Below are positions 11,961 to 56,747 of a stretch of 64,000 nucleotides of DNA, in pieces. Source of the DNA: Geosiphon pyriformis uo1 (taxonomy: Eukaryota > Fungi > Glomeromycota); assembly GCA_016748015.1 (NCBI GenBank), contig JAAOMT010000495.1, positions 20,446 through 84,445 of the forward strand. The letters run 5' to 3'. The notes under the pieces are model-generated. The model did not search any database. It was not told the origin of the DNA and saw only the letters and a list, made by a program, of their open reading frames with translations. The position numbers and the translations under genes are program-made. How positions within the stretch are numbered: position 1 is the stretch's first letter; every line of letters begins with the position of its first letter.

Positions 11961-12429
11961 ATGTCACGAGAAAAGTTTTACAAAGATTTCAATCCTGACC
12001 AAACCTTTCCTTTGATCAATTTTTTAAAAAAAATTTTAACAAAACCAAAGCTTCTTTTATTAATAACGATCTTGGGATTGTTTTTATTTATATCTAAAAA
12101 CTTGAATTCGAATTCAATAAAAAAGACACCATTTATCAAAAAAAGGAACGATATTGTAAATTCCGCTCTTGTAAGCAAATATGAAACAGAAGGTGGTCAA
12201 TTAGTGGCTATAAGTCAAATTCTAACGAGAACCAACACAAAAATTGTTGTCGACAATCCAAATATTTTAAGTCTTGTCCAAAAAATGTCCAACTTTGCAA
12301 ACATTCTTTACTGCTATCGATCTAAAGGAAGTGTACATTCATCAAACTCTTTGGAGGGCACTATGGGTAAGGTTTTGTGTCTCTCTGCTTTTTTTTTTCA
12401 CTTACTGAACGACAGAATATTAACAGTTC

Positions 12430-12464
<35 letters not shown>

Positions 12465-13416
12465 TTTTTTTCTAATTTCAGCGGATTACCTCGCATTTCC
12501 TAAATCAAGAGAACTTATAGCTTATTTTCGAGGCCAGGAAATGTCAGTAGAACAATGGAAAAATAGAAAAACTGATTTAGTTCCATACAAAAATGTCCCA
12601 GGGGCCTTAGTTGATAGTATTTGGGCGAGTAATTCACTCACTATTGAAGAAAAACTTGAGTCGAAAATTTTGAAAGTCGTTAAAGATTATGAGGGAGAGG
12701 GTGGGACGGTATACTTAACTGGTCACGGTATTGGTGGAGGTAATTATATTTAATTTATATTCTTAAACTATAAAATTTCACATGTAAATCTTAAATTTTC
12801 TGATTTTCTTTAATTTTTTCATATACTATTACTACTACTACTACTACTACTACTAGCTTATGCTGTGCTCGTTGCTCTACGCTTGCTTGAAGCATATGAA
12901 GAAGCTAAAGATCGTCCTTCAGCCCAAATCAACGTAAAATTCGCCGCCATCTCATTTGGTCAACCTCGTCTTGGAAATAAAAGATTCGTCGAATATTTAA
13001 ATCAAAAATTAACTGTATATCGTGTCACAAATATGGACGATTATTTCCCTCATTTTCCAAATTCAAATGAATCTGAACTCTCTGAACCAATGGTGCATCA
13101 CGATACAGAATATTGGATTTCAGATGACTGTGATTGCACCAATGAAGGATCTAATAACGACGAATTGCAACTATACGTATGTTCTCAGGTCAAAAATGGG
13201 GAGGAAAACTTTGTAGGTTTCAAGCAAATAATCATTTTTTTGTTTCTTTTAGTAATATTTTATGTCCTATTACTAAACATATTTTATTTCCTCTTCCAGG
13301 AATGTAATTTAGGGACAAAAGGATTAAACATAAGAGCCCATTATGGACCATACTTTGGAACAACATTTAGAGATTGCAGTAAATCTGGTAGCAAGAACAA
13401 AAAGTTCTTCCCATAA
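11961..13416 (+). CDS. Lipase class 3-like secreted protein, catalytic Ser to Gly (copy 1, 378 aa)
   Basis: Exons 11961-12366, 12482-12739, 12857-13212, 13300-13416. Hydrophobic N-terminus, ANILYC, IAYFRG, YLTGHGIGG/AYA, ISFGQPRLGN, RVTNMDDYFPHFP, HHDTEYWI, ECN, HYGPYFG. Confidence 0.9.
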
Positions 13417-14523: not shown

Positions 14524-16584
14524 ATGTTGACGACTGATGGAGCAAACCCTTTCGGTCAGGGAATCCCATTTCATCGAGGGAAACCAATTAAATTTTTACA
14601 TTTTGAGGATGGAAGAATAAAATTAAATCCAGATGCTATCGACATTTTAATGTCAATCGAAGGGAATATTGGAGTTGTTTCTGTCGGTAAGTAACCTGTT
14701 TTTACGAATCATCCATGTTGAATTTGGCCTAAAGTTTTATTGACCCTTGAATATCTTAAAGTGGGCAAAAAACACACTGGAAAATCTCACTTTGCAAATA
14801 TCTTGCATGGTCGTCACGATGGCTTTGAAATGGGTAGCAAATTAAAAGGAACAACTGAAGGTGTCTTCATGTGGGATACTCCATTTCAACATGAAGAAGG
14901 TTTGAAAGTCCTAGTTCTTGATTTCGAAGGCTTCGACGAAGATTCCTTATCAGAAACAACGGAGTGGCACAAAAAATTGTTCATTCTTGCATTATCTATT
15001 TCTACGAATATTGTATATACGGTCGACAAATTTCCAACATCCCACACTATCGACCAATTATTGGCGGCAAACAATTTGATGGAGATGATTTCAAAAGAAA
15101 ACGATGACAATTACAATGTTGATATTGGGAAGAGTTTGATTTTCTTATTGAAAGATTGTATTTTTGAGACAAATGAAATGAATGAATATTTCCAAGAAAA
15201 GCTCGACAAGAAATTGGCTGCAGATAGTAAGTTGGTAGTTTATTAACTCATCTTTCCCAAACTTGAATAAATTTTCAAACTAATAAATTGATTCTCAAAT
15301 TTAGGTTATAACTCATTCGCAGATACTTTTTCAGAAGTAGAAGTTTTTGGAATTCCGCCTCCAGGATTAGGTTTAGCTGACCTACGAAAAATGAATAAAG
15401 TTATGACTAATCGTTTCGATAAGGATTATATTGTCGCACTTACTAAAGCCGTCAACGGAGTTTTATCAAATATCGGTCAAAAAAATAACCCAGCCGAAGG
15501 AACTTCAGCCAAGAAATTTTTGGCTAGGATGGATCTCACCTTGAATTACCTAAATAATCAACTCCAACAAAAGATTTCTCCCATTATTCCTATTATTGAT
15601 TATGAGTTTACAAAAGATGTTGAAGCTATCTGGAATCAATTGATTGAGCCTGGATTACAGGAAGGAACTCCCTTTGTGAGTAATACATTTGATGTTTTGA
15701 AATTTATGTCGTTCTCTCTCTCTCTCCCTGATTATTATATAACTGGATTACTCGAATTTAGGAAAATGAATTTATTCTTAAGAACAAATTATTCGAATTC
15801 TACGCGGAATTAACCCAACTTGATCATGAAGATATTTTCGTTGTCGACAAATTATTTGCTAAGAAAGAGAAATTGGCAATACAAAGATGGAAATCATTTC
15901 TTCCCAAAAATCTTACGTGAGTCTAATTAGAAATTAGGTTCTCTGAATTCAATCATTTCACTGACTAGTAATAACATTCCAAACTTTAAAATTCTTTTAC
16001 TTCAGATGGATTGTAGATTTTAAAGTGAATTCTTCAGATTTTCGCGGTTTACCTTGGCCGGCACCTGGTTGGAAATGGGATAAAACTGATTTAAATCAGG
16101 ATCACGGTGGAAAATTTATTCACATTGGATATAAGTTGGCAAACGCTGATGATGATGAATACATATCTAAAAAGACAACTGGATTTTCTTGGTAAAATTT
16201 TTTGTCGTTATTTCAAAAATTAGTTATTCCATGAAAACTTCCTAATAATTAAATTTGTATTTTAGGAATCCGAAGGGGAAATTTTGGACTCATTCAGATT
16301 GTGTCACTGCTCTTTCATATCTTGCTTATGATGAACCGCTTACGACCAAACCATCTGGCTGGGACTTTTGGAGTCCTCAAGATTTATCTGAAGGGACTGG
16401 TGGAAAGTATATCTATCTAGTTTGGAATGTATGTGGTGACAAGCCTCCAGTTTTAGAAATCTATTTCGAATTTTCGGATGAAAGTAAGCCACCTGTTAAA
16501 GAAGGATGGATCGCAGCTGACCAAGATTTATGTGCTGGGTCAGGAGGAACGTTTCTTTGGGGATATTACCGTACTCTCGCTTGA
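14524..16584 (+). CDS. GBP/atlastin (GB1/RHD3-type) GTPase fused to a C-terminal MABP-like beta-prism (552 aa)
   Basis: Exons 14524-14686, 14762-15226, 15305-15675, 15762-15916, 16006-16191, 16266-16584 (1659 nt). KLNPDAIDILMSI, VVSVVGKKHTGKSHFAN (G1), GFEMGSKLKGTTEGVFMW (G2), LVLDFEG (G3), FLLKD (G4). C-terminal repeats DLNQDHGGKFIHIGY, DLSEGTGGKYIYLVW, DLCAGSGGTFLWGYY. Confidence 0.88.
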
Positions 16585-19311: not shown

Positions 19312-20800
19312 TTATAAATTTCCACTTTCTATTGTATTTTGATTACAATCGTTGAAAAAAACCCCAAAATAAGGACCATAATGAGGTCTTTGATTAGATT
19401 GTTCGACTTCAGCCTCAGTCGTAGTGTTCAAATTGCATTGCTAAATTGAATAAATGGGTTTTAAATTTTATGTTGTCAAAAGCAAGCTTCTTTCAATATG
19501 TTGAGAAACCTACCCCGTTTTCACCACTATAAGCGCCTCTTTTGAATCCTGGACATTCATAGATAACATGCTTTCCATCAATAGTTGGCCCTCCAAGGGG
19601 CGTAGTCTTACAATTGCAATCTGGTTCAGCTATCCAATATTCAGTATCATGATGCCTATAGGACCCTTTAGCTAGAAAATCTCTTGGAATCCAATCGTTG
19701 GAATGGGTAATCCGAAATAATTTTGCTCTCAAAGGCCAAAATACCAAGTTCACCAATTCAGCAAAATTGTCATTGCCGATTCGTGGTGCACCAAAAGTTG
19801 CCACATAAACGCTAGACTCAAAAACAGGCCAATTTTTTCCCCATTTACCAGTTAAGAATTTTTTAAAGTACAATGCTGCCAAGAGTGCATAAGCTTATAG
19901 ATATAAATAGTCAAAAGAATTATGGGAAAAGTTTTGGGAAAATCAAATCCACAAAAGGCAATTAAAAATGTATTGGCCTGAAGTCAATCAAATTACCTCC
20001 CCCGATACCATGCCCGGTGAACCAGAACTGGGCTTTAGAAAACCAGCTATCTGGTTTTTTTTTCAAAAGTTTTTCAAATTTGGCTAGTATTGCAGACATC
20101 ATTTCTTTCACATGATGATCCCAAGAAGAATCAATTTCGCCTCTCATCAAACCACGACTAGGCGACGAGTAAGTGAATGTTGACATTCCCTTTGGTCTAT
20201 TTCGCCAGTTGATACGTGAATAATCTCTCCCACGAAAGTATGCAACTATAATATCCTGATTTTCTTTATCAGTCACGACATCAGCTAGAAATTCGGACGA
20301 TAAGATGAAAAAGATTTGAAATCACTTTACAATAATATATTGTATAAAATATTTTTCATACCACGAATATCCTCTTCAAGTGCTTGACTTCCCACATTAT
20401 TGCCAATACGACAATAAGCGTAATTAGCATATTTTGCCATTTTGGTGAGGATCTTTATCTTTGCCCGGTTACTGTAACGTCTTTTGACTGGGTATAGCAA
20501 ACCGTAATCTCGTGCTCTTTTAAAATTTTCAACCAATGAATTAACTTTTTCGGTGTAAATTTTCGTGCCAGTGATTATAAAGTGTTTTTCGTCATGATTA
20601 ATCGTAGTTTTAATATTAGACATGATAGTGAAATTCGTATCTTCACTTTTAATGTGTTTTCCATTTGACCAGTTTATTTCTTGTGCAGCAGGATAATAAG
20701 AATCTTTATGGGAATATGTGGTTGATAATATTTTTTTGAAAGCAACATCTTGGGAAGAGAAAAATATAAAATATAAAAAATATAAAAAATATATTATCAT
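19312..20800 (-). CDS. Lipase class 3-like secreted protein, Ser to Gly (copy 2, 411 aa)
   Basis: Exons 20800-20362, 20284-19997, 19893-19514, 19440-19312. AKYANYAYC, VAYFRG, FTGHGIGG/AYA, ATFGAPRIGN, RITHSNDWIP, HHDTEYWI, QCN, HYGPYFG. Confidence 0.9.
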
Positions 20801-22848: not shown

Positions 22849-24332
22849 TTATTCTGGCCAGAAAGCGTTGAATGGAAGTTCATCCATATATTCCCAACAC
22901 ACATTCATCATAATTCCAAAGTAAGGACCATAATGTGCCGCTAACCCTTGGTCTTCAGTTCCTTTCTGTCCTGCGTTGCATTGCTATGTAAAGAAAATTC
23001 AAAAATATATTTCAGTCAAGCATTTTTTTTTTCAATGAATATCTAATGAAACTTTTGTTATACCTTATTTTCACCACTATACTTTCTTAGAGAGGATTCA
23101 TCTCCGGGACAGGAATATAAAGGGTATTCACCAACTAATTCTTGAAATGGATACATGACCTGATCCTTTTGACTGCAATCACAAAAAGGATAAGAAATCC
23201 AAAATTCACGCTCTTGATGTTCCAAAAATTCCGAAGGATGATTGAAGACTGGAAAATGAGGGTGATAATCATTTGTATGGGTTACCCGAACAATTCGAAG
23301 TTTCTTATTGGCTAATCTGGCCAAAGAACTAGATAAAACTCGTGGTTGACCAAATGTTGCTACGAGTACGTCAATTTTACTATTTACTTCGGAATATTGA
23401 GTTTTGAATGCTAAAGCTGCGAGAGTTGCGTATGCTTGATGGGGAAAAAAAAAATCTAATGATCAATAATGAAGATGGACACTTTTATAATAAAATTATT
23501 ATTATTCTTATTCTTATTATTCTTATTATTTTTATTTTTATTTTTATTATTATTATTATTATTATTATCATTACCACCACCAGCACCATGTCCTGTAAAT
23601 ATAACATTGGTCGATTTTCGGATATCCACGCCTCCAAACAAAAGATTCAAATAAATTTCAATTCTTTGAAATAGTTCTGGCTTTATTACTTGAAAATGGT
23701 GGTGAAACTCTGAATCAACTGCCATATTTCGCACAGGTTCTCCAAAAGTATAATTATTTGCAGGAATAAGTTGAGTATGCCTTTCTTTCCATTGTGAAAA
23801 TGACAATTCTGGTCCTTTGAAGTAGGTAATAATTTCTCTTTGTTGAACATCTATAAAACTATCAGCTTTTTTGGAAAATAAATAGAGACTTACAAAGGTT
23901 AAATTATCATAATTATTTTTAAAATTCTCAATCATTAAATTTGAAAATTTTTAACTCCCTACCAACCACTCCAGGGATGTGATGAGCTAAATTATTAATT
24001 AATGTGCTTGGAAAATTTTTTGATAAGAATCTACCAAATGCGTTATTTTTTGAACAGTACGCGAAATTTGAATAATGTGCAAATCTTTTCAATTCTCTTA
24101 TTATCTCTGGACTTGTAATTTGATATTTAACAGGGGAAAAGTTATTGGCATTTGTTTGTGGTACAGAATTTTGTAGTTTAATTGAGTCAAAAATAAAATA
24201 TTTTTCAAGGAAACTGGTGGAAGCTAATATCAGTTTTGGGCTTTGGATTGAATTACTCTTTACAAAATTGAATATGAAGAGAAAAAGACATATTATTACT
24301 GTGAAGAGATGTAGTAAGGTTTTAATCATCAT
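22849..24332 (-). CDS. Lipase class 3-like secreted protein, Ser to Gly (copy 3, 388 aa)
   Basis: Exons 24332-23963, 23865-23575, 23434-23064, 22983-22849. Signal peptide, AHYSNFAYC, ITYFKGP, FTGHGAGG/AYA, ATFGQPRV, RVTHTNDYHPHFP, HQEREFWI, QCN, HYGPYFG. Confidence 0.9.
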
Positions 24333-24924
24333 TTTCCTTAAAACTAGATTTTCAACCAGTATTATTTGGGTTGTAAAGAGAAAGATTATGAAAATTTCCG
24401 GCCTATACTTGAATACTATATCTTTTAGATAAAAGCAATGACTAAAATTAGATATGTTTTTATTTTCAGAATGGTTGTTGTGTATTTATATTTATTAATT
24501 GAGTTAATTAATCAGAAATTGGGATTAAAGGCGACAAACATACCGGGTGAGATAAGACCACGCTTAAATATTTTGTGCAGTGATTAAAATAACAATTTTA
24601 AAGTTTAGGACTTTTCACTATTAACTCGATATCCTTGAAAAAAAAATTACATTTTTTAAAAAGAAGCTTTAAACATTGATAAATCTTGGGAAGAATGAAT
24701 ATAATGTACAAACTGCTAATACAGAATTATGAGGATTTTCTCAAGATCTTGAAAATTTTTTTGAAATACTAAAAACCTTAAAATTGCACGTGGGTGCTTA
24801 TCTTTAATAACAAAAGACATTTATTTTTGTTCAATTTATTATTTAATTAAAGAGCGAGTTGAAAATTCGAAAAATTTATTAACAAATAGGTCTCCAAAAA
24901 GATTTTTGTTGTAAAAATGTTCAA

Positions 24925-25065
24925 GAAAGAGGTGAAAATTGCGCATATTATTAGACGGTCAGCTACTTGTGTTAAATGTTGTTTTAAATTATTAGAAGTC
25001 AAAGGGCTAAAACCTACAAGCATTGGACCAAAGAAGATTGGCGGTGTGTTCTTTGGACAGAAAAA
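24925..25065 (+). mobile_element. Tc1/mariner transposase fragment
   Basis: KIAHIIRRSATCVK (HTH-like) and RAKTYKHWTKEDWRCVLWTE (compare WAxxHxxWTxEDWxxVLWSDE upstream of the first catalytic D); no TIRs found. Confidence 0.7.
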
Positions 25066-26200: not shown

Positions 26201-27526
26201 ATGGAAATCCTTTCAAAATTTCTTTGGTTAATTCACTTGATTTTCATGATAGTTTTTTCATCAAATTTAATATCAAAAACATTCGAAACCTCCTCCCTAT
26301 TTAAAATATCTAAACAAATAAAATATGAACAAAATTTTCGACAAAATACGACATCACTCTTTTTCAAAAAAAAAATTATCATGGAATAAAAAGCATAAAA
26401 AAAGACCAAAATTTTTTATTTATAGATAAAAGGAGCTTGGGAAAGTTGGAAATCAATGATAAAGCCATAATCAAAATGTTAACTACTATGGCTGAATATG
26501 CTAATTTGGCTTATTGTTCAGAAACTAACAAATTTGGTGAACTTGGTATCAAAGATGCTTTTGGTATGAATAAAATATTGAGAGTTTAAATAAACATTTA
26601 TCATTCATATTTATCAAAATCTAATTTTGAAATAATAATTTTAGTTAACATTATTCAACACTTGGAAAGCAAAGAAATAATTTGTTATTTCAAAGGATTG
26701 CATTTCTCACGTGAGGAGTTGAGCAATAGAGTTCCTAACTTCTCCGGTTATAGAACTAGGAGTGGCTATGTGGATACTGAATGGATGGGCCATTCAATCA
26801 AAATTGCAAAATTGATTATGAAGAAAATTCTGGATTTCTTGATAAAGACTCCTGGAATTCATAAAAAAGTTTATTTTACTGGGCATGGCGTGGGCGGCGG
26901 TTAGATTAACTAAAAATTTGGATTTTTAATTTGATTTTTAGATTTAATGAAAATTGTAAATCAAATCATTTTATAATTTTCAGTATATGCGGTATTAGCC
27001 GGTCTCTATATACTAGAATCGTATTACGAAAAAGTTCTACCAGAACTTTCCAAACCGTTGATAGTCGAATTTCTTGCCATTACTTTCGGACAACCACGAA
27101 TTGGGACAAGTCAATTTGCATGTCTCATTAATAAGAGGTTGAAAGTTTATCGAGTAACGATTTATAATGATTATTTTCCCCATTTTCCAATTGGGAATGA
27201 TAAAATGATTGAAGTTCATCATGATACAGAGTATTGGATTTCCGAAGAAGATTGCTATTGCTCTAATCAGATTGAAGGAAATAGTCAATTAAAGTATCAA
27301 TCCAAAATTTATGAATGTTTGAACGATAATGGGCAACTGTTTGAAAAAAAGGAAAAAGAAAATTTGGTAAAAATACTCTTTTTCTAGTAAATTAATTTTG
27401 AATGATTCAAGCTTGGCTAAAATTTTTTTTGAATTTGAGTAGAAAGGTAATTTGGGAACGGACGGATTAGGTGAATTAGTCCATTTTGGGCCATATTTCG
27501 GTACCACATTTAACGTGTGTCATTAA
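26201..27526 (+). CDS. Lipase class 3-like protein, Ser to Gly (copy 4), with a one-base frameshift in exon 1 (sequencing error or young pseudogene)
   Basis: Exons 26201-26563, 26645-26899, 26984-27366, 27443-27526. One extra A in the A10 run 26366-26375 restores the frame to AEYANLAYC. FTGHGVGG/VYA, ITFGQPRIG, HHDTEYWI, HFGPYFG; conserved last-exon Cys is Gly (KGN). Confidence 0.8.
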
Positions 27527-28149
27527 TAATGTCCTCATGAATAACTTTTTTTGAATATTTAATTTTTGTAATTAATGCGAGCTGAGGATTTATCCGAATT
27601 TGTATCTCATCGCCTCTTTTGGTAACTAGTAATGTACGGGAAATTCAATCATAATAGTCTCAGCTTTTAGAAATAACCAGTGAACTCAAAACTGAATAAA
27701 TAATATTTTTCTAGACAAATTTTAATAAATTGCTATAAAATATTTTTCCAACTCATATTCTCAGCTATAATATTTTTTGAAAGTCAGAAATTGGAAGCTT
27801 GTAAAATATTTTGAGAAATTCTAACCTCAAAATATTTCAGCAGCGAATGAATTTGAAAAAGAAATTCTTTAGCAATAATTTCGTGAATCAATTGTCGTTT
27901 AACAGCAAATTAACCAAGGATACATTTGATATGTTATGAAAATTAATCCGAAATATTAAATTTAAAATTTTTTTGATAACTTTTACTAATGAATATTAAT
28001 AAACTTCTCTATTGATCTTTTAATTTTACCTAAAAATAGTTTATAATTCAAAAAGCTTTATAAAACTCTAGATGAGAATTAGTGCTAAAAAGAAAATAAA
28101 CCAAATTTCTTTATCCTTTCAATGGGTGTTTATACATGAACTTGAATAT

Positions 28150-28760
28150 TACTCAACTGATTTCTATGATTACAATTTCAAAGAGATAATTGTTTATTTC
28201 AAACCAGAATCTTTAAATCTTCAACAATGGGAACAGAGTCCAATTTCTTTGATTCCTTTACTCTTGGGAAAAGCAGAACAAAAAACAGTTTTCATTGATT
28301 AGGAACTGGATCCGAATATAGAATCAATAATAATAGTGACATTTTTAAAATGATTAAACGGCTAAGAAAGGTCAGGTGCCAGTACCATTGCGATTATCAG
28401 AAGTTAATGATAAGGTGTTTATATTGGTGATGGTGAAAATTTATGGTTATATCAAAATTGTAAATCATTATTAATATCTTTCGTAGCATACAGTGATAGC
28501 CGGATGCCTATACATGCTTCAGTAACTTTTCGGCTCTCCAAATGAAATAAACACTTTTTTGGCAACCAAAAATTAGGCTGAAAATCCTGTATGTTTTTTA
28601 AATTTTTATTTTTTCTAAATTCTTACAAATTTGGAAATATGCTGAAATATCGTAAACTCTAATTTTTAGAATTGTAATAAAGCTCAATCATATTTTTCAG
28701 ATCAAAATTTAACCACGTTTGGGGATCGTGAAACGGGAATGGAATCCATCCTAAACGAAA
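28150..28760 (+). pseudogene. Degraded Lipase_3-like pseudogene
   Basis: DFYDYNFKEIIVYFKPESLNLQQWEQ (exon-2-like), then broken remnants tag|CATAC (AY), (F)WQPKIR / GQPK-like, ENP|gtatg, ag|NCNKAQS, with stops and deletions. Confidence 0.7.
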
Positions 28761-35122: not shown

Positions 35123-35154
<32 letters not shown>

Positions 35155-39296: not shown

Positions 39297-40758
39297 ATGA
39301 TTTTCAATCACTTTTGGGAAAAAAAGAAAGAGTTCTTTGCAAGACAAATTATATTTCTTCTCATCCTTATTCTAGCTACTCTCGAAATCCTTATCAATGA
39401 AGTTGAAAAATATTACATAGTCAAAGTAAAATTACCTGAAAATAAGTTAACTTGGTCAAATAATCAAGACTTTTCTTATTTCTGGCCAGAAACACTCCAA
39501 AATAATAAGACTTTGAATAAACGTGAATTAATAGCAGCTGGCCCTTCAAGAGGTTTTGGTGGTAGCTCTAAAAAAAAATTCCCTCCTAAAACACTAGTTA
39601 CAGATCCAGAGATTATAAATTTATTAAAAACGATGGCGTTCTGGGCAAATATACCGTATTGCACTCCTGACCAGAAGCTTGCAAAAAATTCTTTAGGATT
39701 AATTTGTAAGAAATATTTTTTTCAAGTTTGTAATTATTTAATTTAAGAAAAAAACTATTTTCAATGGTTAAACTTTCATATTAAAAATTTTTTTTCTGAT
39801 GGAAAGTTGATATTTCACTACAAATGATAGGAAAAAAGGAAGGAATAGTAATATATTTCCGTGGTGAGTTTTGTAAAACTTCTCATTGAATTCACTATAA
39901 TTCCAGCTTCAATATTTTTTTCTTCAAATTAAGGACCTGAACTTACTAGAAAGCAATGGAATGATAGAAAATTTAATTTAGACTCGGATCGTAAAAAAAA
40001 TTCTTGGCCAGTAGATTCTCAATGGTATGAAGTGATCAAAGGAACCATGGAAGCATTGTCAAAGCGAATTGTACACCTTAGTTCCGAACTTACTGGCGAT
40101 ACGGTGTTCACATATTTTACAGGCCATGGAATAGGAGGAGGTAATGTTATATTTAAATTTGTGCAAATATAATAAAGTAAAATTAATTTTTATGTTTTTT
40201 GGATTATAGCATATGCTCTATATATAGGTCTTTTATCTGCACTACTGGTGGAAAAAAATACAGTACATAGAATAGCGCTCGTTGGTAAAAAAATGGATGT
40301 CACAGTTGTTACATTTGGACAACCAAGAGCGGGAAATTTTGAATTTGCACAGCGTGCCAATACTTACATGAGGTCAAAATTTTTCAAAATTTATCGTGTG
40401 ACTCATTCAAATGATCATGTGCCACAGCGACCATATTTAGAGTCAACTTCAAAGCCTTGGTTGCATACCGATCGAGAATATTGGATTTCATTGAATTGTG
40501 ATTGTTCGCAAAAAAAAGAGCCTGAATATGAACTTTTTCAATGTCCAGGATATTCTAATGCTGATTTTGAAAAATACGGAGAAAATAAGGTAATTCTATC
40601 AAGTTATTATTTTTCGAAAGTTTGACTTTATATTTATTTTATGATAACTTTAATAGGAATGTAATCTTGGTACTGACGGTGCAAGTAACACGGCTAATTA
40701 TGGACCATACTTTGGAATTACTTTTGGAAAATGCGATGAGTTTTTTGAATTGAATTGA
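39297..40758 (+). CDS. Lipase class 3-like protein, Ser to Gly and His to Asn (copy 7, 384 aa)
   Basis: Exons 39297-39705, 39807-39863, 39934-40140, 40210-40589, 40657-40758. AFWANIPYC, VIYFRGP, FTGHGIGG/AYA, VTFGQPRAGN, RVTHSNDHVP, HTDREYWI, ECN, ANYGPYFG. Confidence 0.9.
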
Positions 40759-41298: not shown

Positions 41299-42455
41299 GT
41301 GAAAATTCTAAAACCTAAAATTCTCAACGTTTACAAATTTAGAATGCTTAATATTGGAAATGAAAATTTTGCAAAGCATACAGCAAACTGCTTAGACTTG
41401 AATGATTATAGTATTTCGGTTGACAGTTTAAGTGAAAAACCTCGGAATAAAAATAAGCTGGATAAGAATTTCTCAGAAGGTTCATTCCCTATCATTAGAA
41501 CATGAATTATCAAGCGACTTGACGGGTAGCCCGAATAATGATTCCTTTGAAATATTATTTTATAAAGGTGAAGAATCACACAATTTTTTTTAGTATTTAG
41601 GCTCTGTTATTTGATAGGAGTTTTTTGTAAGTCTTTGTCCACGGTATTTTATTTGAAATTTTTCTTGTCTAAAAATCAGTTCACCAAATTCAGTGACCAG
41701 CAAATGAACGAGAAAAAGATTTTCACAAGTCAATTTATTCCCAATGTAAATAATGCCTTTGTTCACGAACTTACTTATAAGACCTTCTTAATATCCCAGA
41801 AGGAGATTTTAATAAAGTTAAAGCAACTTTTTGGCAAGGATTTGGCACCCAATTTTCACTTTTAAAGTCATAGCATTGATGCTGATATAAAATTATTAAC
41901 TTGCACTTGTTGTTTTCTTGGTTTAACTTTGCACTGTAAATACTTTTAGTAAATTTTTTTGGCTCCATTATATGCTTTTATTAGCCGCATTAACCACAAT
42001 GAGAACATTCAAATATGCAAAAATTGGGAGTTTTTACATTCGGCCAATATCGTACTGGAAATTGGGCTTTTGCATACTATATCAATACTCTAATTGGACG
42101 AAAAAAACTAATGATTTACAGGATTACGCAACGTTTTGACAGGATAGTGCAGTGGCAACCATGGATAATTAATAGAAAATATAAGCATCATGCATTAGAA
42201 TAATTCATCGTTAGCTCAAATATCATCAATTTCTGCTATAATGAAGAGAAAATGAAAGAGAATTGTGTATGTTAAATTTTATACATAATGTTAGATGGTT
42301 TTACAGTAAAAAAAAATATATTTTTATCATTTCCGACTTTTTTATAGACCTGTTCGCTAAATTCTAATCCTAATTATTCAATTAAACATTCTGAGTATTC
42401 TAACATACACAATGGTCCATATTATGGACTAATGATGGGGCAATTGCAAATAATT
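41299..42455 (+). pseudogene. Lipase_3 pseudogene retaining the nucleophile Ser codon
   Basis: NFAKHTANCLDLN; FHF*SHSIDA (41854-41883); FTFGQYRTGN; RITQRFD; HHALE*; last exon TCS...HNGPYYG. In-frame stops and a lost splice donor. Confidence 0.8.
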
Positions 42456-45400
42456 TTTAGCATCCCTAAAAGTTAAAACTGGTCTAATAATATTATTATT
42501 ACATGTTAAAATAACAAGGTAAAAAATAGCAGAGAGAGTAATAATAAAATTAAATAAGAAATAAAGAAAGCAAATTGAATATTTTAATTAAGGGAATAAA
42601 TTTTGGGATATCAAAAAAAAATAAAAGCATAGGTTATAAATGTCACATAATATAATTTTATTATTTTAACGGCAAATCTTAAAATTTAATATTAATTTTG
42701 TTTTATTCAAAATCATTTCTCAAATAAAAATTATAGAAATATTTCTCAAGTTAATTTTAATAATACAATTTTCAAAGAAAAAAAGATTAATTATTTTGTT
42801 TATAAGACTAAAAAAAAAAGAAAATGTTTCGGAGTTTAATATCATCAATTTGTGAAATATAAATTATTAAAGAATAAATTTGATTACTAAACAATTGAAT
42901 TATTAAGATTAAGTCTAATTTATTGTGTTTAAAAAATACTCTTAGAGGTGAATTTGAATTATGTGTAAAATAAGAAAACTTTGTAAATTCATTCTAATAA
43001 ATTTATGAGTTTTTCACTTTTAAAATTTATATAAACATCTAAAATATATCTATTAAAGGAGTTAAATTTATTTGCTCTTTCTTCGAATTCCTCCAATTCA
43101 AGTGAACTGAAATTGACACCCATCTCTTCTGCTTTTCGCGCAAAAATAAAACCATCAGAAAATATAAATTTAAACGATAATTGAATGCTATAGAATTCAC
43201 AAAAATCTATTATCTGTAACTTTCAAATTACTTTCTTTAAAGGTAATTTTCTTGATTAGAATATTTTTTCGTGTAAATAATGAATATTAATATAAAACTG
43301 GAGTAAAAATTCAATTATTTTAATTTTCCTGCTTTCGAATCTTTTTCCCTCAATTTATGGGCGCTTTTAAAAAATTGTTTTTTACCTCTTTTTCTGCAAT
43401 TTTAGATTTTCTATTCATTGAGAAATACCATTTTTCATATTTTTTTTCTAATAACAGAATTGCAACTATAAAACTGATGGAAGTGGGAAATCAGCTCACT
43501 ATAGCCCATATTTTCAGAATTTGCGTCTACACCTTCCTTTTAAACGATCAAACATATCTCCCAAAAGATTTTCAGCAGATTTATTTTAATAAAAATGTGA
43601 ACTATGAAAATTCGGATGGTAAGATATCTACGCCAAAGAATTAAAATTAAGAAATTCTAGATTAACTAAAATTATTGATTTTTTGTAATGATTTATTTAA
43701 TATAAAAAATTTAATAATCGCAAAATGGATAGTCAAAATTTTTATACTATTAAGAAAAATTTATTAAATAAAGGAATTTAATTCATATTTTAACAGCAGT
43801 CCATTTTAATTTTATGAAGATCAATGAGATTCAAAATAGATTTAAAAAGTGGTATTGGAAATTTCTTAAAATGATTTTCTAATTATTTTTGAAAAATGAA
43901 CATTATTTGAACATTATTTTTATAAAATTATTATAATTTAACATGATCAATGTAATACCAAATTGAGGATTTGTAGTGTTAACAATGGCAAAAATATAAA
44001 GTATTGGTGTAATAGATTATAATATGTTTTACCAATCAATAAAAAATTATTTTTTTAAAATAAAAATTATTTCAAAATTTAAAATGATGATTGGTAAAGT
44101 AAAAAAAGTTTACAATGTATTGTCTTCTTCTGGTATATATACCATAAATAATGATTTTTTAAATGCATTTTTTTGAAACCAATTACAAAGGAAAAATTTT
44201 ATAAAAGGTGGTAATTTTAAAAAAAATAATAATTTACATGATTTATTTACTATTTATAGATCAATTACAATATATAACAAATCAATATTTTATAATAATT
44301 ATTAATCAATCTTTATAATATTTTTTTTATAAAACTGTTATATTTGATTTAATTTTTTTTCTAATTTATTCATATATAAATATTTTTGAATTAAAATTAA
44401 TCTTATTTTTTTGGTTAATGAAAATAATTTTGAATTAAAAAATTATTTAGAATGCCATTAAACATTTTTAATTAAAGAATATACTAGAACTTTCAAGCTT
44501 AAAGCCAAAGAATGATTAAAATTTTTATGAATTTTCGCTTAAATGGGCCATTATAGTTTGCAGAAATACATTCAGCTGACAAAGATTAACAAGAATTTAA
44601 AGTTTATAAAAGGTTTTACTTAGGTAATCAATATCTTTAGTTTGTGTAGATAAAATGAAATTTTCAAACGTGTTAAAATCAATACTTAGTTCACTTACTC
44701 AAACTTTGAACCATATTAAGAATTTGATTAACATAAATTTGTACCATGTGAAACAATAAATAATAGTAACCAATGATGAATCATGGGAAAACAATTCCAT
44801 CATAAGAAAGAAAGAAAGAAAGAAAGAAAGTAATCGATAAACCTTTATCGTTTCACATTTTACCATTCAAATTTTAAACATGTATTTTAACAAACTGTTT
44901 TGGGTCCGAAAGTAGCGAGGATCCTAAAATTATTCCGCTGTGATAAATATTTATTTTATCAATTTTATCAATTTCATCCATTGAAATTGGAATCATATGG
45001 CCAAAAAAACCGTGAATTGTACCACCGATCTTTTTTTTTAAGTTACTTTAATCAAATAAAGCAAAATCAATACTTAATAAACCCCCGAAAATTTACCTTG
45101 AATTATCTTGAATTTAGAACGACGTAATTTGTTTTTGGAGTGGGAGGGAAGGGAAAAATTTCTTGATTCGAACAAAATCTAAATAATTTCTGATTCTTTG
45201 AATCGAAAGGTCCAAATATATATCTGTCATCATTATAAAAATTTAGTCTTAATTTGAAGAATGATTGTATGGTCAGTAAAAATTGCGAAATTCTAATAGG
45301 AAAAATTTCCCATAAATACAATATTCCCGAGCTTGAAAACGATTTAAAATATCGTCTCCTATCTGTTGGGATATAAATTTTTTGTAAACAAACAATTTTC

Positions 45401-45661: not shown

Positions 45662-47337
45662 ATGAAATATTTTTTGATTGACTCTTTATCTTTTCTTAAA
45701 AATCTTGCTGATTCTTTACTATTGAATTCAAATTTAATTGTTGAAAAGGGTCAAAATTTTAATCGATATAATTATTTTAAAAAAATTATTTTGATTCTCA
45801 TAATAGGTATAATATGGTTAAATCTAATAATAAAACTTCAAAAGAATACAACCACCGAGACGACACCTTTTAACGAATATCTTTCACGAACGAAAACCCG
45901 AATACAAGGCATTAATCCCCAGAACTCGTTAATAAATAATCAAATTGAGCATTTCCTAAAAAATCGAACATTGAAAAATGGAGAGAGAGCAAATCTAAAA
46001 ATCGTTACAAAACCTTCTTACAGAAAAATTAAACGTTCTTTAAAAATATTGCCGATTAGTAATACTGAAACTTTAAGATTTTTAAGGAAATACGCTCAAT
46101 TCGCTAATCTTCCATATTGTCGTGAAAATAATCAAGTCGGTATTCATGCTCAAAGACGAGATGTAATAGGTAAAAAGATCAATCCATCCATCAATCAATC
46201 AATCAATCAATCAATTAAATGACTGCAATGAGTTATTTAATCATTTCGATTACTGATTTCATTGATGAATAAATATTTTTTTTTAGCTGATGTTTTTATG
46301 AATGAGCAGACGTATGAGATTGTGGCGTACTTTAGAGGTTATTATTTTTAATAGGCTCAAAAAAGTTGAATTTTTGAGGGTTTGATTTGGAAATAAAATT
46401 TTTGAAAAAATTTAGGTGAATTCTTGACTGAAGCTCAATGGCAAGCAAGAATCAGTCGTGTCACAACCTTGGTCTCAACTTATCCAGAAGATATGGTCAC
46501 CTTAGTTGATAAATATTGGATCGAACATGTTAATGCAATGACACCATCTTTATTAGAAAGAATTCGAGAACTTTTAAAGCTTGTCAAAGAAAAGCATGGT
46601 GGTTTTGACAAGAGAATACCCATCAGTTTTACTGGGCATGGAATTGGTGGTGGTAAGCAGTTTAATGATTTCTTATCAAACTTTAAAAGATTTAAATAAA
46701 TAAATGTAATATTTAAAAATGTTTTTTTTTTATGTTTTCAGCCTATGCAGTATTATCAGCATTAAGGTTTAACCAAGCAATACATACAACAAATGGTTGG
46801 CCTGTAAATTTAATTAGCATTAACACAGTCACTTTTGGTGAACCACGTATTGGAGATGAGTCATTTGCAAAACGCGTAAATAGAGAATTAAATGTTTTTC
46901 GCGTAACTCACACAAATGACTACTTTCCACACTATCCAAAGGGAGGATTTCGTCATCACGACATCGAATATTGGTTCTCTGACCAAGATTGCAATTGCTC
47001 TCATGCTGAAGATTCTCAGATTAAGGTGTTAAAATGTACTGGCGATGGTGGACCAAATGGTGAAAGCGGTGAAAATCCGGTAATTATTCCCAAAAGCTCT
47101 TTTGATTTTCTTTTTCAAGTTTTCGAACGCTTCTTTTAAGAGTGATATATATATATATGTTTTTTCTTTCTTGATTATTAGAATTGTAATTTAGGACAAG
47201 AAAGTACGAAAGAAAATGCTAGAGCACATATTGGACCTTATTTTGATATTGTTATAGGGAGCTGCGAAATAACAAATAATTTACCATTCAGTTTATACTT
47301 TTTAGAAGATAAAATGATACCTCTTCATGTTAATTAA
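45662..47337 (+). CDS. Lipase class 3-like protein, Ser to Gly (copy 8, 429 aa)
   Basis: Exons 45662-46169, 46287-46337, 46416-46652, 46742-47079, 47182-47337. Internal hydrophobic anchor, AQFANLPYC, VAYFRGE, FTGHGIGG/AYA, VTFGEPRIG, RVTHTNDYFPHYP, HHDIEYWF, NCN, HIGPYF. Confidence 0.9.
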
Positions 47338-47918: not shown

Positions 47919-48092
47919 ATGATGAATTCTAATTTTTCTTCTTTTACAACTAATAATAACTCCCAAATTTTCCGAAATTTGATAAAATTGTTGTTTTTGG
48001 TGATTCAAATTCAAGTAAGGAATGAACATCAAAAAATACATTAGTAGTGGTAAGAAATGATTTTTCAAAAAAATTTGATTTATTATTCAAAA

Positions 48093-48133
<41 letters not shown>

Positions 48134-48651
48134 ATAAATAATTTTTCCCTTTTTTTTTTCAGCCATGGTTAACAATTAATGATTACTACTTTACTGACTT
48201 TAAAGTGGAACCATATGATGTTGTAATGCATATGGTTTTATCCTGGGAAAAACTCTATGAAGCTGGTATCCGAAACTTTTTACTTCCAACTAATTTCGAT
48301 TTAGTCTCTCAACCGGCATACAAAGCTTCTTCACAATCTTTTATCAAAAACCTTGATGAAATTACGAGAAAAGATATTTCTATTTTCAAAATTGAAGCTC
48401 AAAAATTTAAGGATAATCATAAGGATACCAAAATTTATATATTTGAGACGGCGGAATTTTTTAATCGATTAATGTCTACCCTAGTATCCCTTGATTCAGA
48501 ATATAATATTAGAGACGAATGTGTTATTTCTGACGATAATACTCTACACGTTAACCCAAATACTAAAAAACATTTTTTCTTTGACGCTTATCATCCTGAA
48601 ACTAGAATTCATGCTGCCCTTGCCCTTGGCTTCGCATTTGCTCTTTGTTAA
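47919..48651 (+). pseudogene. GDSL/SGNH hydrolase (CE16-like acetylesterase), truncated and frameshifted
   Basis: FDKIVVFGDSNS (block I, 47978-48013), WLTINDYY (block III), KLYEAGIRNFLL, FFFDAYHP (block V). Block II is absent and the signal-peptide-like segment is out of frame with block I. Confidence 0.75.
48093..48131. repeat. (ATT)n microsatellite in the GDSL intron
   Basis: Tandem ATT units. Confidence 0.9.
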
Positions 48652-49175: not shown

Positions 49176-50621
49176 ATGGTTTATTGTTCATCAAAAAGAA
49201 AATTAGCTACCCAAATTTTAACAAAGATATATAAAAAAAGATATAGACAAAAACATTTTCTATTGATATTTTTTTTATTTTTTACCATCATAAAATCAGC
49301 TCATGAAGAAGATAAAAGAAAAGAAAAAAATTGGCTGGTCAAACCATATTTTTTAATATCTAGAGGAAAAGCGAAATTTCAATCAAACTCATTCAAAAAC
49401 ATTCTTGATAGAGAAAATTCTTATTCATCTCCTTTTCACCATAAAATTTCTGAAAGATTTAAAAGAAATCTTCCAAGCTATGTGACAAACATACCCATGC
49501 CTAAATCACTAGTGACAGATCCATTGCTATTAAAATTTTTTAAAAGGACTGCAATTTACGCAAATATACCTTATTGCAATAATGCTAATGAAATTGGTCA
49601 AGAACATGAAGACGTTATTGGTTGGTCACAAAACTATTTGATCATCATCTTTCATATTTTATCTTTGTTCATTCCTTAATACTAATTTCTCGTATTTTTT
49701 TCTTTTTTAGCCGATATTTTTAAAAATGAAAATACTGGAGAAATTGTGGCTTATTTCCGAGGACCACAAATAACAGTTGGAAAAAAAGTCACAAAAGCAT
49801 CCAGGGTTGAACTTTTCTCCGAAACGCGCCCTATTTCTTTCAGCATTGATTCAATATTGACAAAGGCCCTTTCTGAAACAATAATTACGAGAATGATTGA
49901 TAAAATTTCTCTTTTAAGTAAAAATCAAACAAAAATAACAACAGGAACAGCAACCAATGAATCAATCAAAGTTTACATGACTGGTCATGGAATAGGAGGA
50001 GGTGAGAATAAATGTGATTTTTAGAAAAGTGAAATAAAACCTTTATAAAATCAAATTAAGTTTAAAATCTAAAATTTTAAGGTTATGCAGCGTTATTGGG
50101 AATTATAATGGGCGCAAATATAAACGTCGACAAATATGCTAAAATGAAATTCGATTTCCGTCCACTTTATATCTATATTGTAACTTTTGGTCAATCGCGT
50201 ATTGGTGATAAGCAATTAGCAAGCTTAGCGAATCGGATGGGTCATTGGAATCCTTTTTTTAAAATCTATCGTGTGACTAATTCCAATGATTTTGCTCCAC
50301 ACCAGCCAAGTTTCACAGAGGAAGGTGCCAAATTAATACATTTTGGAAAAGAATATTGGATCTCGGATTCTTGTAATTGTACAAATTTTTACGTTTGCCC
50401 TGGTGATTATTTACTTGGTGAAGTTCCCTATGGGGAGAGTGAGGTGAAATCAAAAGTAAAAATTTTCAGTCTCATTTTTATTTTCTTTTTACAAAATTTT
50501 TTTATATTTTTATATTTTTTGACAGGAATGCAATTTAAGCACCGATGGTTTAGGCTTTAATGAACATTTCGGTCCCTACTTTGGTACAACATTTGGAGAT
50601 TGTTCTAATTTTTCCTTATAA
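49176..50621 (+). CDS. Lipase class 3-like protein, Ser to Gly (copy 9, 397 aa)
   Basis: Exons 49176-49620, 49711-50001, 50082-50443, 50526-50621. AIYANIPYC, VAYFRGP, MTGHGIGG/GYA, VTFGQSRIG, RVTNSNDFAPH, HFGKEYWI, ECN, HFGPYFG. Confidence 0.9.
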
Positions 50622-52549: not shown

Positions 52550-55500
52550 CAAAAAAAAAGTTCTTATTACGTGTACATCCCACAAGAATTTTCGGAATAA
52601 ATAAAATCTTTGTTTTGACTTTCTAACTTCAATATGATTTAATATAATAAAGTTTTACCAATCTATGCTCTAGTGAGATAATATCAATAATTTCTGATTA
52701 AATTCAATAATCAGATCATCAAAATTACTATTTGTATATATTTGTTCCCCCTCCCCCCAATGCGCAGCATACAGCCTTTTTATTATCTTCAAATTAAAAT
52801 CGGATAATCTCTTGTTTGTTTATTCTCATGATCTCTAAGAAGAGCTTAAGATAAATCTTTGATTATTTGGTTGGTTTTACTTTAATTTACCCTTTTAATC
52901 AGCCATTTTCCCCTTTAAAAAGCAAAATTCTTTTACAAATCTTAAAAATGAACTTTAAAAGCTCCATTCTTTTATACCATTTAACGCATCGAATAAGAGG
53001 GGATAAGTGTAATCAGCAAACTCTTTTCTTTAGAATTTTCATGGTTTTTATTGCATTTTTAGCCTTTACTGGGTATTCTAATAATGCAACACCTATATTA
53101 AACGGTAACCTAAATAATACCCAAGTGGATCCAACGTATTTCTTTCCAGATATTGGCAGTATCACAGATTCTTTTATAAGTGAAGTTCTCGCATTAGATA
53201 TCAATAAAAATGATAAGGCTTATCAAAGCCAGATTTTTGCGAAAACTACCGATGGCCTTGGATCCATCAACGTTGACCAAGTCCAGAATTCTCCAAGTGA
53301 TCCAAACAACGATTTAATCACTATTATTGCTGACGATGATTCATCCCTTGAAATTCCTAACGATGATCAATTCACTGGAATTAACGATCAATTTGCAACA
53401 AATACATTAAGTTCAATGGATTCGAGTTTACCAACTTTAGAGAATGAACCCGACAAAGAGCTAGGGCCAGAGCTTCCTCCCCTAGGATTTGATATTAATA
53501 CGGAACTAGAAACTAGAGAACCTGTAGTAAATTCTAATTCATTTACTAGCAACTTCGGAGATCTCTTCCGAAATAATTGGGACAAAGAAAAAATTACAGT
53601 CGAAAGTTGGAGTGATACTGCCAAACACATCAAATTTAATGCCAGATTAGCAAATGCAGCTTACTGTAATAATTCCAAGGTGTCAATTCGGTATTTTGGT
53701 AAATTGAATTTCACATCTTTTCTTCTTACACTTCTCACAAAAAAATTTTCTTGACAATTTTTTTATCTCTTAGATAATCATAATTCTGAGGCACAAATTC
53801 TTTTTGCTGCGTTTGCTGGTGTTGGATTTGAGTTGCGGAACTTTGTAGAAACCAAAGATATAGCTCAAGTGCAATATCCTTTTTGGGATGATGAAAAGCT
53901 TTATCATCAAAAATATTATCCTTCTGGATGGGACAAACAAAAGGTTCACAAAGGAATTTATAACCTATGGCGACCAGCACAGGAAAAATTTATAGAAAAA
54001 ATGGAATCTATGTCTGAATTGAATAATGCCATTATTCAGTTGGTTGGGCATGGACTTGGTGGAGGTACCACATCAGAAATTCTCATATTTTTCAAATAAT
54101 TCTTATCAAAACTATTTCTCACCCTTGAAATATTGATTTGCAAAAGCATATGCCTTATTTGCGGGGTTGGCCTTTCTATCAAAGCATGAAGACCGAAAGA
54201 TGACAATTTATACTTTTGGAGAACCAAGACTAGGAAACAAGCACTTTGCTGGACTTATCAACAATCTAATCAAAGAAAAACGACTTGATGTTTTCCGAGG
54301 AACAACACCCGGTGATCCAATCATTCATTGGCCAAATTTACCCAATTTAGATTTTATAGCCGATTCAAAAGGTCAAATCCCATCGAATATTCGCTACCAG
54401 CATCATCAAAAGGAGTTTATGTATGTGTCAGAAACAGATAGATTATATGAATGTAAAATTCCTACATCAGGAGAAGAAAACAAAGTAAGCATTTTTTTTC
54501 TACTAGTATTTCGATTGATGTTTACTCTAATATAATCTTATTCTTGAACTCCACTATTTTTCTATAATATTAAGGACTGTGCNNNNNNNNNNNNNNNNNN
54601 NNCAAAAAAAAAGTTCTTATTACGTGTACATCCCACAAGAATTTTCGGAATAAATAAAATCTTTGTTTTGACTTTCTAACTTCAATATGATTTAATATAA
54701 TAAAGTTTTACCAATCTATGCTCTAGTGAGATAATATCAATAATTTCTGATTAAATTCAATAATCAGATCATCAAAATTACTATTTGTATATATTTGTTC
54801 CCCCTCCCCCCAATGCGCAGCATACAGCCTTTTTATTATCTTCAAATTAAAATCGGATAATCTCTTGTTTGTTTATTCTCATGATCTCTAAGAAGAGCTT
54901 AAGATAAATCTTTGATTATTTGGTTGGTTTTACTTTAATTTACCCTTTTAATCAGCCATTTTCCCCTTTAAAAAGCAAAATTCTTTTACAAATCTTAAAA
55001 ATGAACTTTAAAAGCTCCATTCTTTTATACCATTTAACGCATCGAATAAGAGGGGATAAGTGTAATCAGCAAACTCTTTTCTTTAGAATTTTCATGGTTT
55101 TTATTGCATTTTTAGCCTTTACTGGGTATTCTAATAATGCAACACCTATATTAAACGGTAACCTAAATAATACCCAAGTGGATCCAACGTATTTCTTTCC
55201 AGATATTGGCAGTATCACAGATTCTTTTATAAGTGAAGTTCTCGCATTAGATATCAATAAAAATGATAAGGCTTATCAAAGCCAGATTTTTGCGAAAACT
55301 ACCGATGGCCTTGGATCCATCAACGTTGACCAAGTCCAGAATTCTCCAAGTGATCCAAACAACGATTTAATCACTATTATTGCTGACGATGATTCATCCC
55401 TTGAAATTCCTAACGATGATCAATTCACTGGAATTAACGATCAATTTGCAACAAATACATTAAGTTCAATGGATTCGAGTTTACCAACTTTAGAGAATGA

Positions 55501-56635
55501 ACCCGACAAAGAGCTAGGGCCAGAGCTTCCTCCCCTAGGATTTGATATTAATACGGAACTAGAAACTAGAGAACCTGTAGTAAATTCTAATTCATTTACT
55601 AGCAACTTCGGAGATCTCTTCCGAAATAATTGGGACAAAGAAAAAATTACAGTCGAAAGTTGGAGTGATACTGCCAAACACATCAAATTTAATGCCAGAT
55701 TAGCAAATGCAGCTTACTGTAATAATTCCAAGGTGTCAATTCGGTATTTTGGTAAATTGAATTTCACATCTTTTCTTCTTACACTTCTCACAAAAAAATT
55801 TTCTTGACAATTTTTTTATCTCTTAGATAATCATAATTCTGAGGCACAAATTCTTTTTGCTGCGTTTGCTGGTGTTGGATTTGAGTTGCGGAACTTTGTA
55901 GAAACCAAAGATATAGCTCAAGTGCAATATCCTTTTTGGGATGATGAAAAGCTTTATCATCAAAAATATTATCCTTCTGGATGGGACAAACAAAAGGTTC
56001 ACAAAGGAATTTATAACCTATGGCGACCAGCACAGGAAAAATTTATAGAAAAAATGGAATCTATGTCTGAATTGAATAATGCCATTATTCAGTTGGTTGG
56101 GCATGGACTTGGTGGAGGTACCACATCAGAAATTCTCATATTTTTCAAATAATTCTTATCAAAACTATTTCTCACCCTTGAAATATTGATTTGCAAAAGC
56201 ATATGCCTTATTTGCGGGGTTGGCCTTTCTATCAAAGCATGAAGACCGAAAGATGACAATTTATACTTTTGGAGAACCAAGACTAGGAAACAAGCACTTT
56301 GCTGGACTTATCAACAATCTAATCAAAGAAAAACGACTTGATGTTTTCCGAGGAACAACACCCGGTGATCCAATCATTCATTGGCCAAATTTACCCAATT
56401 TAGATTTTATAGCCGATTCAAAAGGTCAAATCCCATCGAATATTCGCTACCAGCATCATCAAAAGGAGTTTATGTATGTGTCAGAAACAGATAGATTATA
56501 TGAATGTAAAATTCCTACATCAGGAGAAGAAAACAAAGTAAGCATTTTTTTTCTACTAGTATTTCGATTGATGTTTACTCTAATATAATCTTATTCTTGA
56601 ACTCCACTATTTTTCTATAATATTAAGGACTGTGC
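52550..56635 (+). repeat. Apparently identical 2033-bp direct duplication separated only by an N gap
   Basis: 52550-54582 matches 54603-56635 (offset 2053); all ORF translations are identical; N run at 54583-54602. Confidence 0.9.
52948..54582 (+). CDS. Duplicate of copy 10, truncated at the gap (probably an assembly artefact)
   Basis: Exons 52948-53698, 53774-54064, 54147-54484, and 54575 to the gap; same sequence as the gene at 55001-56747. Confidence 0.55.
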
Positions 56636-56747
56636 AATATCTGAACCACTTGGTGCATTTGAAAAACATTCAGGACCTTATTTTGGAATCAAAATGGGAA
56701 CATGCCAAGAATTGGTGAAGGATGCAGGACTTCAGGAAACTCATTAG
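55001..56747 (+). CDS. Lipase class 3-like protein with long acidic pro-region, Ser to Gly (copy 10, 499 aa)
   Basis: Exons 55001-55751, 55827-56117, 56200-56537, 56628-56747. ARLANAAYC, AAFAG, KVHKGIY, LVGHGLGG/AYA, IYTFGEPRLGN, PGDPIIHWP, YQHHQKE, DCA, HSGPYFG. Confidence 0.9.

Follow-up and report, generated by a model that had tools for sequence, protein, structure and literature searches.

Ten distinct genes of the class-3 lipase fold, spread from position 11961 to position 56747 of a 64,000-nucleotide stretch of the Geosiphon pyriformis genome (contig JAAOMT010000495.1, positions 20,446 to 84,445 of the forward strand, hereafter the window), encode proteins in which both the catalytic serine and the oxyanion serine or threonine of active lipases are replaced. 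The array is part of a family that numbers about 440 loci in this fungus, and we read its members, with a probability of about 0.58, as non-catalytic, secreted binding proteins that would be exported, processed at a Lys-Arg (KR) site in many cases and used to capture a ligand in the old acyl groove without hydrolysis. The observations behind this reading are the missing nucleophile and oxyanion residues, the conserved fold and pocket floor, selection on the genes and the transcription of gene 1; a lipid as the ligand and a role at the symbiotic interface are put forward as hypotheses. The original prediction, which had proposed a diversified family of non-catalytic lipid-binding proteins at the fungal surface or symbiotic interface, is partly supported.

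Catalytic residues of the array proteins

A six-frame scan of the window located ten GHxxG motifs without serine exactly where they had been predicted. The ten genes, numbered here along the window (an exact 2,033-bp duplicate being counted with gene 10 as one gene), were modelled, and the spliced models were analysed in scripts. Nine of them are intact, as had been claimed: their models translate without a stop into 379 to 500 amino acids and have GT..AG introns of 61-140 nucleotides. At the position of Ser144 of the Rhizomucor lipase, glycine is found in nine proteins, alanine in one and serine in none. The oxyanion triplet, RG[S/T] in active enzymes, reads RGQ, RGR, KGP, KGL, AGP, AAP, RGP, RGE, RGP and AGV in genes 1 to 10, every triplet being as predicted, with serine or threonine in 0/10 and proline, a residue that has no backbone NH to donate, in five. 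Pairwise alignment with the Rhizomucor lipase placed G110 opposite Ser144 and Q46, the Gln of RGQ, opposite Ser82; in the Rhizomucor enzyme, the oxyanion hole consists of Ser82 and Leu145 (PMC9266812). Among 89 serine-less domains, only three carry Ser or Thr at the Ser82 position and 38 carry Pro. Because the elbow and the oxyanion positions are both changed, the sequences support a loss of the classical serine-hydrolase chemistry in the array proteins.

The remainder of the triad persists. The Asp is present in all ten array genes, in agreement with the prediction, and in 146 of 147 Gly domains. The His, judged by sequence within the motif H-x-G-P-Y-F, is present in nine of the ten (gene 7 has Asn) and in 108 of 123 Gly domains; most copies had been expected to keep it, and the same motif occurs in L004, a canonical Geosiphon lipase. 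Among the features of an active class-3 lipase, the Asp and the His are thus found, and the nucleophilic Ser and the oxyanion Ser/Thr are not. Membership of the Lipase_3 fold family is indicated by the match of exon 3 to the PF01764 profile (Pfam E 1.3e-9), homology queries being single exons or database proteins. The further claim that the cysteines and the TFGxPR motif are kept held for most genes; the CxC pair is absent from gene 10 and the first exon-4 cysteine from gene 4, and in genes 1, 6 and 9 the motif is SFGQPR, TYGAPR and TFGQSR, respectively.

The elbow codon is GGT in genes 1 to 3, GGC in gene 4, GCT (Ala) in gene 5, GGT in gene 6 and GGA in genes 7 to 10, which bears out the reported difference in Gly codons among copies. 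Since glycine is the residue most easily accommodated in the strained nucleophile elbow, and since Ala, Ser and others are tolerated there as well, the Gly need have no role of its own.

The transcripts of gene 1 carry the same substitution. The expression check covered gene 1 and a neighbouring GTPase gene. Contigs from two sequencing runs (X2 and X3, from two studies, one labelled DNA) skip the introns of both genes and are for this reason regarded as transcript assemblies, although their depth cannot rank expression. One contig of 1,322 nucleotides spans all four exons of gene 1, and the gene 1 contigs of X2 and X3 show zero differences from the genome; the message therefore encodes GHGIGG, and serine is not restored, in line with the original prediction.

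Genome-wide range, history and selection

Pattern scans covered a genome of 128.3 Mb in 792 contigs, the published assembly being 129 Mb in 795 scaffolds, the largest of 2,733.9 kb (PMC9453076). The exact pattern G-H-x-x-G-[GA] followed by an intron donor, with Val and CGN-Arg left out, gave about 440 sites, pseudogenes and possible assembly duplicates included: 320 Gly (72%), 41 Ala (9%), 49 Ser (11%), 14 Asp/Glu and about 19 others. Reversed control patterns yielded 1-3 genome matches, compared to 54-320 for the real patterns. A near-identical 21-mer reading GHGGGA (C337:729, C337:7836, C339:26548, C513:34062 and C546:571463) is probably part of an unrelated repeat and raises the Gly count by ~5%. 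All four Gly codons occur at the elbow genome-wide, and 40 of the 49 Ser codons are of the AGY type, a single step away from GGY. Asp is found at eleven sites and Cys at three, each one change from a Gly codon; both residues serve as nucleophiles in other α/β-hydrolases. Locus DNA was examined for 20 loci from 54 listed motif sites, the remaining 34 sites being mostly Ser.

Among 1.84 billion proteins, most of the best 150 matches read GHG or GHA. All serine-less proteins of visible source, in word-based and HMMER searches with few matches or the best 150 listed, come from Geosiphon, and the four non-Geosiphon matches that were checked (Panaeolus, Pseudolycoriella, Massospora and Coemansia) are ordinary GHSLG lipases. 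On these grounds, the restriction of the serine-less family to Geosiphon is supported within the limits of the searches: none was found outside Geosiphon among the matches listed, from which weaker relatives in Ambispora or Paraglomus could escape. The ESM Atlas returned generic Lipase_3 clusters only. An expansion of Lipase_3 in Geosiphon, mentioned in the original prediction, has reportedly been described with its genome. No publication on the serine loss was found in the literature, the Geosiphon genome paper (Malar et al. 2021) lying outside that search.

A tree of 201 domains, computed with FastTree and rooted on the lipases of Panaeolus, Pseudolycoriella, Massospora and Coemansia, places the canonical L004 (RGT / VH / GHSLG) first, then a grade with VH and without the CxC insert, and last a large radiation with VD and CxC; as the deep branches of the tree are long and have weak support, this order of events is tentative. 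Gene 10, which keeps VHKG and has no CxC pair, is of the early-branching type and falls in the grade. The array genes are spread over several distant clades, and the array is therefore a sample of the genome-wide family, an old mixed cluster and not a unit; two of its members are inverted. Ser forms are scattered over the tree, with 18 parsimony changes when the elbow column is removed. L003, a Ser protein that kept AGP, is sister to gene 6 (local support 0.96), the Ser protein L009 pairs with a Gly protein (0.99) and a Ser pair coded by TCA is nested inside an Ala clade (0.995), so that several Ser copies look like secondary regains. As L003 retains AGP and RG[S/T] is found in only 1 of the 20 Ser-bearing domains examined, the tree suggests an early loss of the oxyanion residue and a secondary origin of many Ser copies, which would probably be inactive as well.

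The proposal of an old loss held under purifying selection is supported by the tree, by the ratio of nonsynonymous to synonymous substitution rates (dN/dS) and by a simulation of frame survival. In unsaturated pairs, the whole-domain dN/dS ranges from 0.36 to 0.50, and its bootstrap intervals stay below 1; the ratio is 0.10-0.23 at family-conserved (core) positions, 0.5-0.7 at variable positions and 0.4-0.6 in the leader and stalk, a split of sites by conservation that is partly circular. Fourfold sites are saturated in most array pairs, and under neutral simulation the probability of a frame without a stop is below 0.002 at 0.1 substitutions per site. Since the frames survive saturated distances while neutral simulation destroys them, the genes have been kept as proteins. 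Regarding positive selection, no site class with dN/dS above 1 was found among the few unsaturated pairs, and the family that the prediction called "diversified" gave no sign of diversifying selection in them. The introns of gene 6 and L003 are 76-96% identical, which suggests that the NG86 method may overstate dS and that the variable positions may be near neutral.

Protein anatomy, proposed function and alternatives

The array proteins share a layout of hydrophobic segment, variable stalk and domain. The segment, whose type was judged by hydropathy alone, lies within the first 60 residues of all ten proteins (residues 31-45 in gene 1), has a 15-mer hydropathy of 1.7-3.1 and is often preceded by a basic stretch. 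In 22 of 41 family members, the dipeptide KR lies 18-48 residues ahead of a Y-C motif, compared to 9.4 in shuffled sequences (0/2000 composition-matched shuffles), and RK, KK and RR are not enriched in the stalk windows of the same 41 members; an enrichment confined to KR would fit Kex2 processing. With a leader in 10/10 proteins and KR in about half of the members, the layout would suit a secreted, Kex2-processed pre-pro-protein, and the array proteins are probably exported, as had been predicted.

The AlphaFold model of the gene 1 domain (pLDDT 87) has a short lid helix at residues 50-55, and its top Foldseek matches are fungal class-3 lipases, feruloyl esterase A and the Rhizomucor lipase (E 1e-13, TM about 0.7). 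Pocket residues were mapped from the Rhizomucor acyl-pocket list of PMC9266812, the lid being the least reliable part of the alignment. The positions of W88, F111, L145, P177, V205, L208 and P209 are 89-99% hydrophobic, and that of I204 is mostly Tyr, Phe, His or Trp. The D91 position holds Arg or Lys in 65% and the H108 position Asp or Glu in 80% of cases; a lid Trp and the R/D pair occur together in 107 of 172 domains across clades. By this alignment, the network of lid and oxyanion hole has been rewired, with R in place of D91 and D in place of H108.

The following scheme would account best for these data. A radiation of about 440 loci specific to Geosiphon would derive from a fungal class-3 lipase; the N-terminal hydrophobic segment would lead the protein into the secretory path, and a Kex2-type protease would cut at KR in the stalk of about half of the members and free the domain. 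This disulfide-rich domain would then capture an amphipathic ligand in the old acyl groove without hydrolysing it, and the quickly evolving lid, rim and loops would determine the specificity of the domain. Its mode of action might be that of a trapped S-to-A lipase mutant or of a neuroligin: outside the hypha, or in the space that surrounds the cyanobacterial partner, it might serve as a carrier, a scavenger or a recognition protein. As ligand, we guess at an acyl lipid, a glycolipid or another bacterial surface molecule, and the link to Nostoc is likewise a guess. Besides the association of Geosiphon with Nostoc, no fungus-cyanobacterium endosymbiosis of this kind is known. The bladders of G. 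pyriformis house Nostoc punctiforme (PMC1853082). It is conceivable, if rather unlikely, that several hundred secreted, variable pattern-binders form a repertoire that recognises, sorts or shields cyanobacterial surface lipids or glycolipids and is the basis of partner recognition and upkeep.

Some observations weigh against ligand capture in the groove. The lid positions L92 and F94 are mostly polar and variable, so that the hydrophobic face is partly lost, which speaks against ordinary binding at a lipid interface; the variable positions evolve near the neutral rate when intron divergence is taken as the yardstick; and the retention of Asp and His would suit a dyad catalyst equally well. The old pocket might even be irrelevant if the proteins act by surface contacts, whether in adhesion, as a coat, as receptors that bind other proteins or as decoys for lipase inhibitors or antimicrobial proteins. 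Neuroligins act in this way (PMC12931606), surface and lid positions are the most variable here, the added CxC pair and extra cysteines would suit a stable extracellular scaffold, and the Asp, the His and the pocket floor could persist for folding alone. We consider this doubtful, as the pocket lining stays hydrophobic with a mainly aromatic I204 position and the lid Trp and R/D pair are kept across clades (107/172). It is improbable that the proteins are enzymes of another chemistry, in which a His-Asp dyad would serve as general base (lyase, dehydratase, cofactor-free oxygenase or slow hydrolysis) and the Gly would give room. Asp is conserved in 99% and His in 85-88%, and there are precedents among α/β-hydrolases for dyad catalysis without a covalent serine intermediate, namely the HOD/QDO dioxygenases and the hydroxynitrile lyases. 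However, about 10% of intact members, gene 7 included, have Asn in place of His, Pro or Lys is frequent at the oxyanion position, residues as different as Ala, Ser, Asp, Arg and Phe are tolerated at the elbow, among others, and hundreds of fast-diverging copies would be unusual for one reaction.

The decayed copies and fragments of the array, its near-neutral variable positions and a genome of which 64% is repeats (PMC9453076) would also be expected of a birth-and-death family under weak selection, made mostly of redundant copies without a specific ligand. This view is largely refuted by frame survival and dN/dS and has very little left in its favour: nine of ten full-length copies stay open, with their splice sites intact, across saturated synonymous distances, core dN/dS is 0.10-0.23, gene 1 is expressed and the KR signal is kept. 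Neutral decay, with dN/dS near 1, stops and no transcript, is confined to the copy at 41500-42450 and the fragments. Least credible of all, and close to negligible, is the restoration of serine in RNA or in an alternative splice form, which would yield active lipases. An intron does begin 10 bases after the elbow codon, but each array elbow motif is followed by GG and then a phase-1 intron, which sets the codon inside the exon; moreover, the GGA copies need more than one change to Ser, and the oxyanion residue is lost too. For gene 1, RNA editing and alternative splicing were dismissed, as the transcript contigs of both studies equal the genomic sequence.

The reading as secreted binding proteins can be set beside known systems. 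Fungal class-3 lipases (PF01764; Rhizomucor miehei lipase 1TGL/4TGL, Thermomyces lipase, Aspergillus niger FaeA 1UZA) have the same fold (sequence E 7e-11) and share with the Geosiphon proteins the lid Trp, the G-H-x-x-G elbow, GxPR, the triad Asp and His and probably a leader with pro-region. By contrast, the Geosiphon proteins have Gly or Ala for Ser144, Pro, Lys, Gln or another residue for Ser82, Arg for Asp91, Asp for His108 and polar residues at lid positions L92 and F94, and they add a CxC insert and occupy about 440 loci of a single genome. Among pseudoenzymes of the lipase or hydrolase fold without nucleophile are the NDRG proteins and the yolk proteins of insects, the latter being regarded as carriers of lipophilic ligands; both belong to other families and kingdoms and are not known to form a large lineage-specific radiation. 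Neuroligins use an extracellular α/β-hydrolase domain without catalytic serine for binding (PMC12931606), yet they are of another fold branch, type I membrane-bound and few in paralogues, with a known protein ligand, so that they offer an analogy and not kinship. In the plant EDS1 family (EDS1, PAD4 and SAG101), a lipase-like domain belongs to the structural family of the Geosiphon proteins (Foldseek 4NFU_B E 5e-7, 7XDD_A E 8e-7); SAG101 is without the triad and the EDS1 data favour binding over hydrolysis (10.1101/2021.12.15.472806). These are intracellular heterodimers with an EP domain and few copies, whereas the Geosiphon proteins have a leader, keep Asp and His and stop, in the models, soon after GPYF, with no C-terminal EP domain of the EDS1 type and, given the leader, probably no intracellular place.

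Serine-less α/β-hydrolases are thus already known, in small families; what is new is the scale and the single-lineage range, with about 440 loci of which nearly nine in ten sites lack the nucleophile. The "lipase expansion" of Geosiphon is probably a binding or recognition repertoire and not added lipid-digesting capacity. As the family is seen only in that lineage of Glomeromycotina which houses Nostoc, it provides concrete, expressible candidates for the question of partner recognition and upkeep.

Array members and neighbouring features

The domains of the array genes are 24-44% identical in pairs (median 33%). Gene 1 (11961-13416, + strand, 379 amino acids), 100% identical to G9A89_008625 of G. 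pyriformis, has exons at 11961-12366, 12482-12739, 12857-13212 and 13300-13416 and reads GHGIG at 12721, its elbow codon being at 12727-12729. Two genes are on the minus strand, both intact with four exons: gene 2 (G9A89_008627, 19312-20800, 412 amino acids, GHGIG at 20015) and gene 3 (22849-24332, 389 amino acids, GHGAG at 23593). The others are on the plus strand. Gene 4 (26201-27526, GHGVG at 26881) has open domain exons and a frameshift in exon 1, where one base is short in a T5-C-A10 homopolymer run (~26359-26377), and this may be a real break or a sequencing error. Genes 5 to 8 are intact, with five exons and an extra intron in or beside the oxyanion triplet: gene 5, a member of a multi-copy Ala clade (29714-31145, 380 amino acids, GHAIG at 30503), gene 6 (33938-35590, 438 amino acids, GHGLG at 34765), gene 7 (39297-40758, 385 amino acids, GHGIG at 40122) and gene 8 (45662-47337, 430 amino acids, GHGIG at 46634). 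An in-frame (TCT)29 expansion at 35114-35200 gives gene 6 a poly-Ser loop, where its sister L003 has three Ser. Gene 9 (49176-50621, about 398 amino acids, four exons, GHGIG at 49983) and gene 10 (55001-56747, 500 amino acids, GHGLG at 56099), which has a long acidic stalk, are intact.

A second GHGLG gene (motif at 54046) was dismissed as a separate gene. The stretch 52550-54582 (+) is 100% identical over 2,033 bp to 54603-56635, across an assembly gap of 20 N (54583-54602); the left copy is cut off by the gap after 8 bases of exon 4, and beyond the gap the same stretch begins anew from its start. Because of this exact identity and of the cut at the gap, 52550-54582 is most likely an unmerged contig overlap, an assembly artefact; apart from this pair, array genes share at most 44% protein identity. 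A decayed eleventh copy (41500-42450, +) has stops and frameshifts and has lost the donor; S-H-S-I-D-A stands at its elbow (41866). G-to-A changes are clustered at 41866-41884 (two Gly codons and the splice donor), and since the same decay has struck the Gly codons on either side, its Ser codon AGC is ambiguous; a mutational bias of this kind may also explain the AGY excess among Ser regains. An orphan exon-4 remnant (CN...AHYSPYF) lies at 43455-43514 (+; tblastn E 3e-4), and a weak fragment like family exon 2 (YFKP..., W) at 28070-28300 (+) was spotted by eye and has no tblastn match.

Automated annotation calls these proteins lipases, as had been foreseen: Pfam says Lipase_3, and the NCBI models fuse or truncate array genes, so that Pfam counts and NCBI models mislead for this family. 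Models P0001, P0015, P0156, P0161, P0074, P0039 and P0050 fuse family members together or with unrelated genes, and NCBI models often drop the leader exon, which makes domain-fusion claims from annotation unsafe. Fusions to receptor kinases or G-protein-coupled receptors (P0161 kinase, P0074 with seven transmembrane segments, P0039, P0050 and P0085) were dismissed, as the partners all differ; in P0161, the kinase is placed N-terminally and no transmembrane segment separates the two parts, and fusion of neighbours is demonstrable in NCBI models of the window (P0001, P0015, P0156).

Within the array lies an intact GTPase gene of the GBP/atlastin type (14524-16584, +, six exons, Pfam GBP E 2e-14). 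Its five introns are confirmed by the transcript contigs, run X3 differing at three bases, and its C-terminus carries three DLxxxxGGxxIxL-like repeats that have no Pfam match and that we take to resemble a MABP beta-prism. A GDSL/SGNH-hydrolase-like remnant or short gene (about 47980-48650, +), with a VFGDS block and an FFDAYHP block, is found between genes 8 and 9 and weakly matches solved SGNH proteins (E 0.012). An intergenic 203-bp inverted repeat pair (24765-24967 / 31195-31389, 72% identity) flanks genes 4 and 5, and a second 20-N gap (63454-63473) falls within short open frames of higher GC content at 63056-63998, which have no Pfam match.

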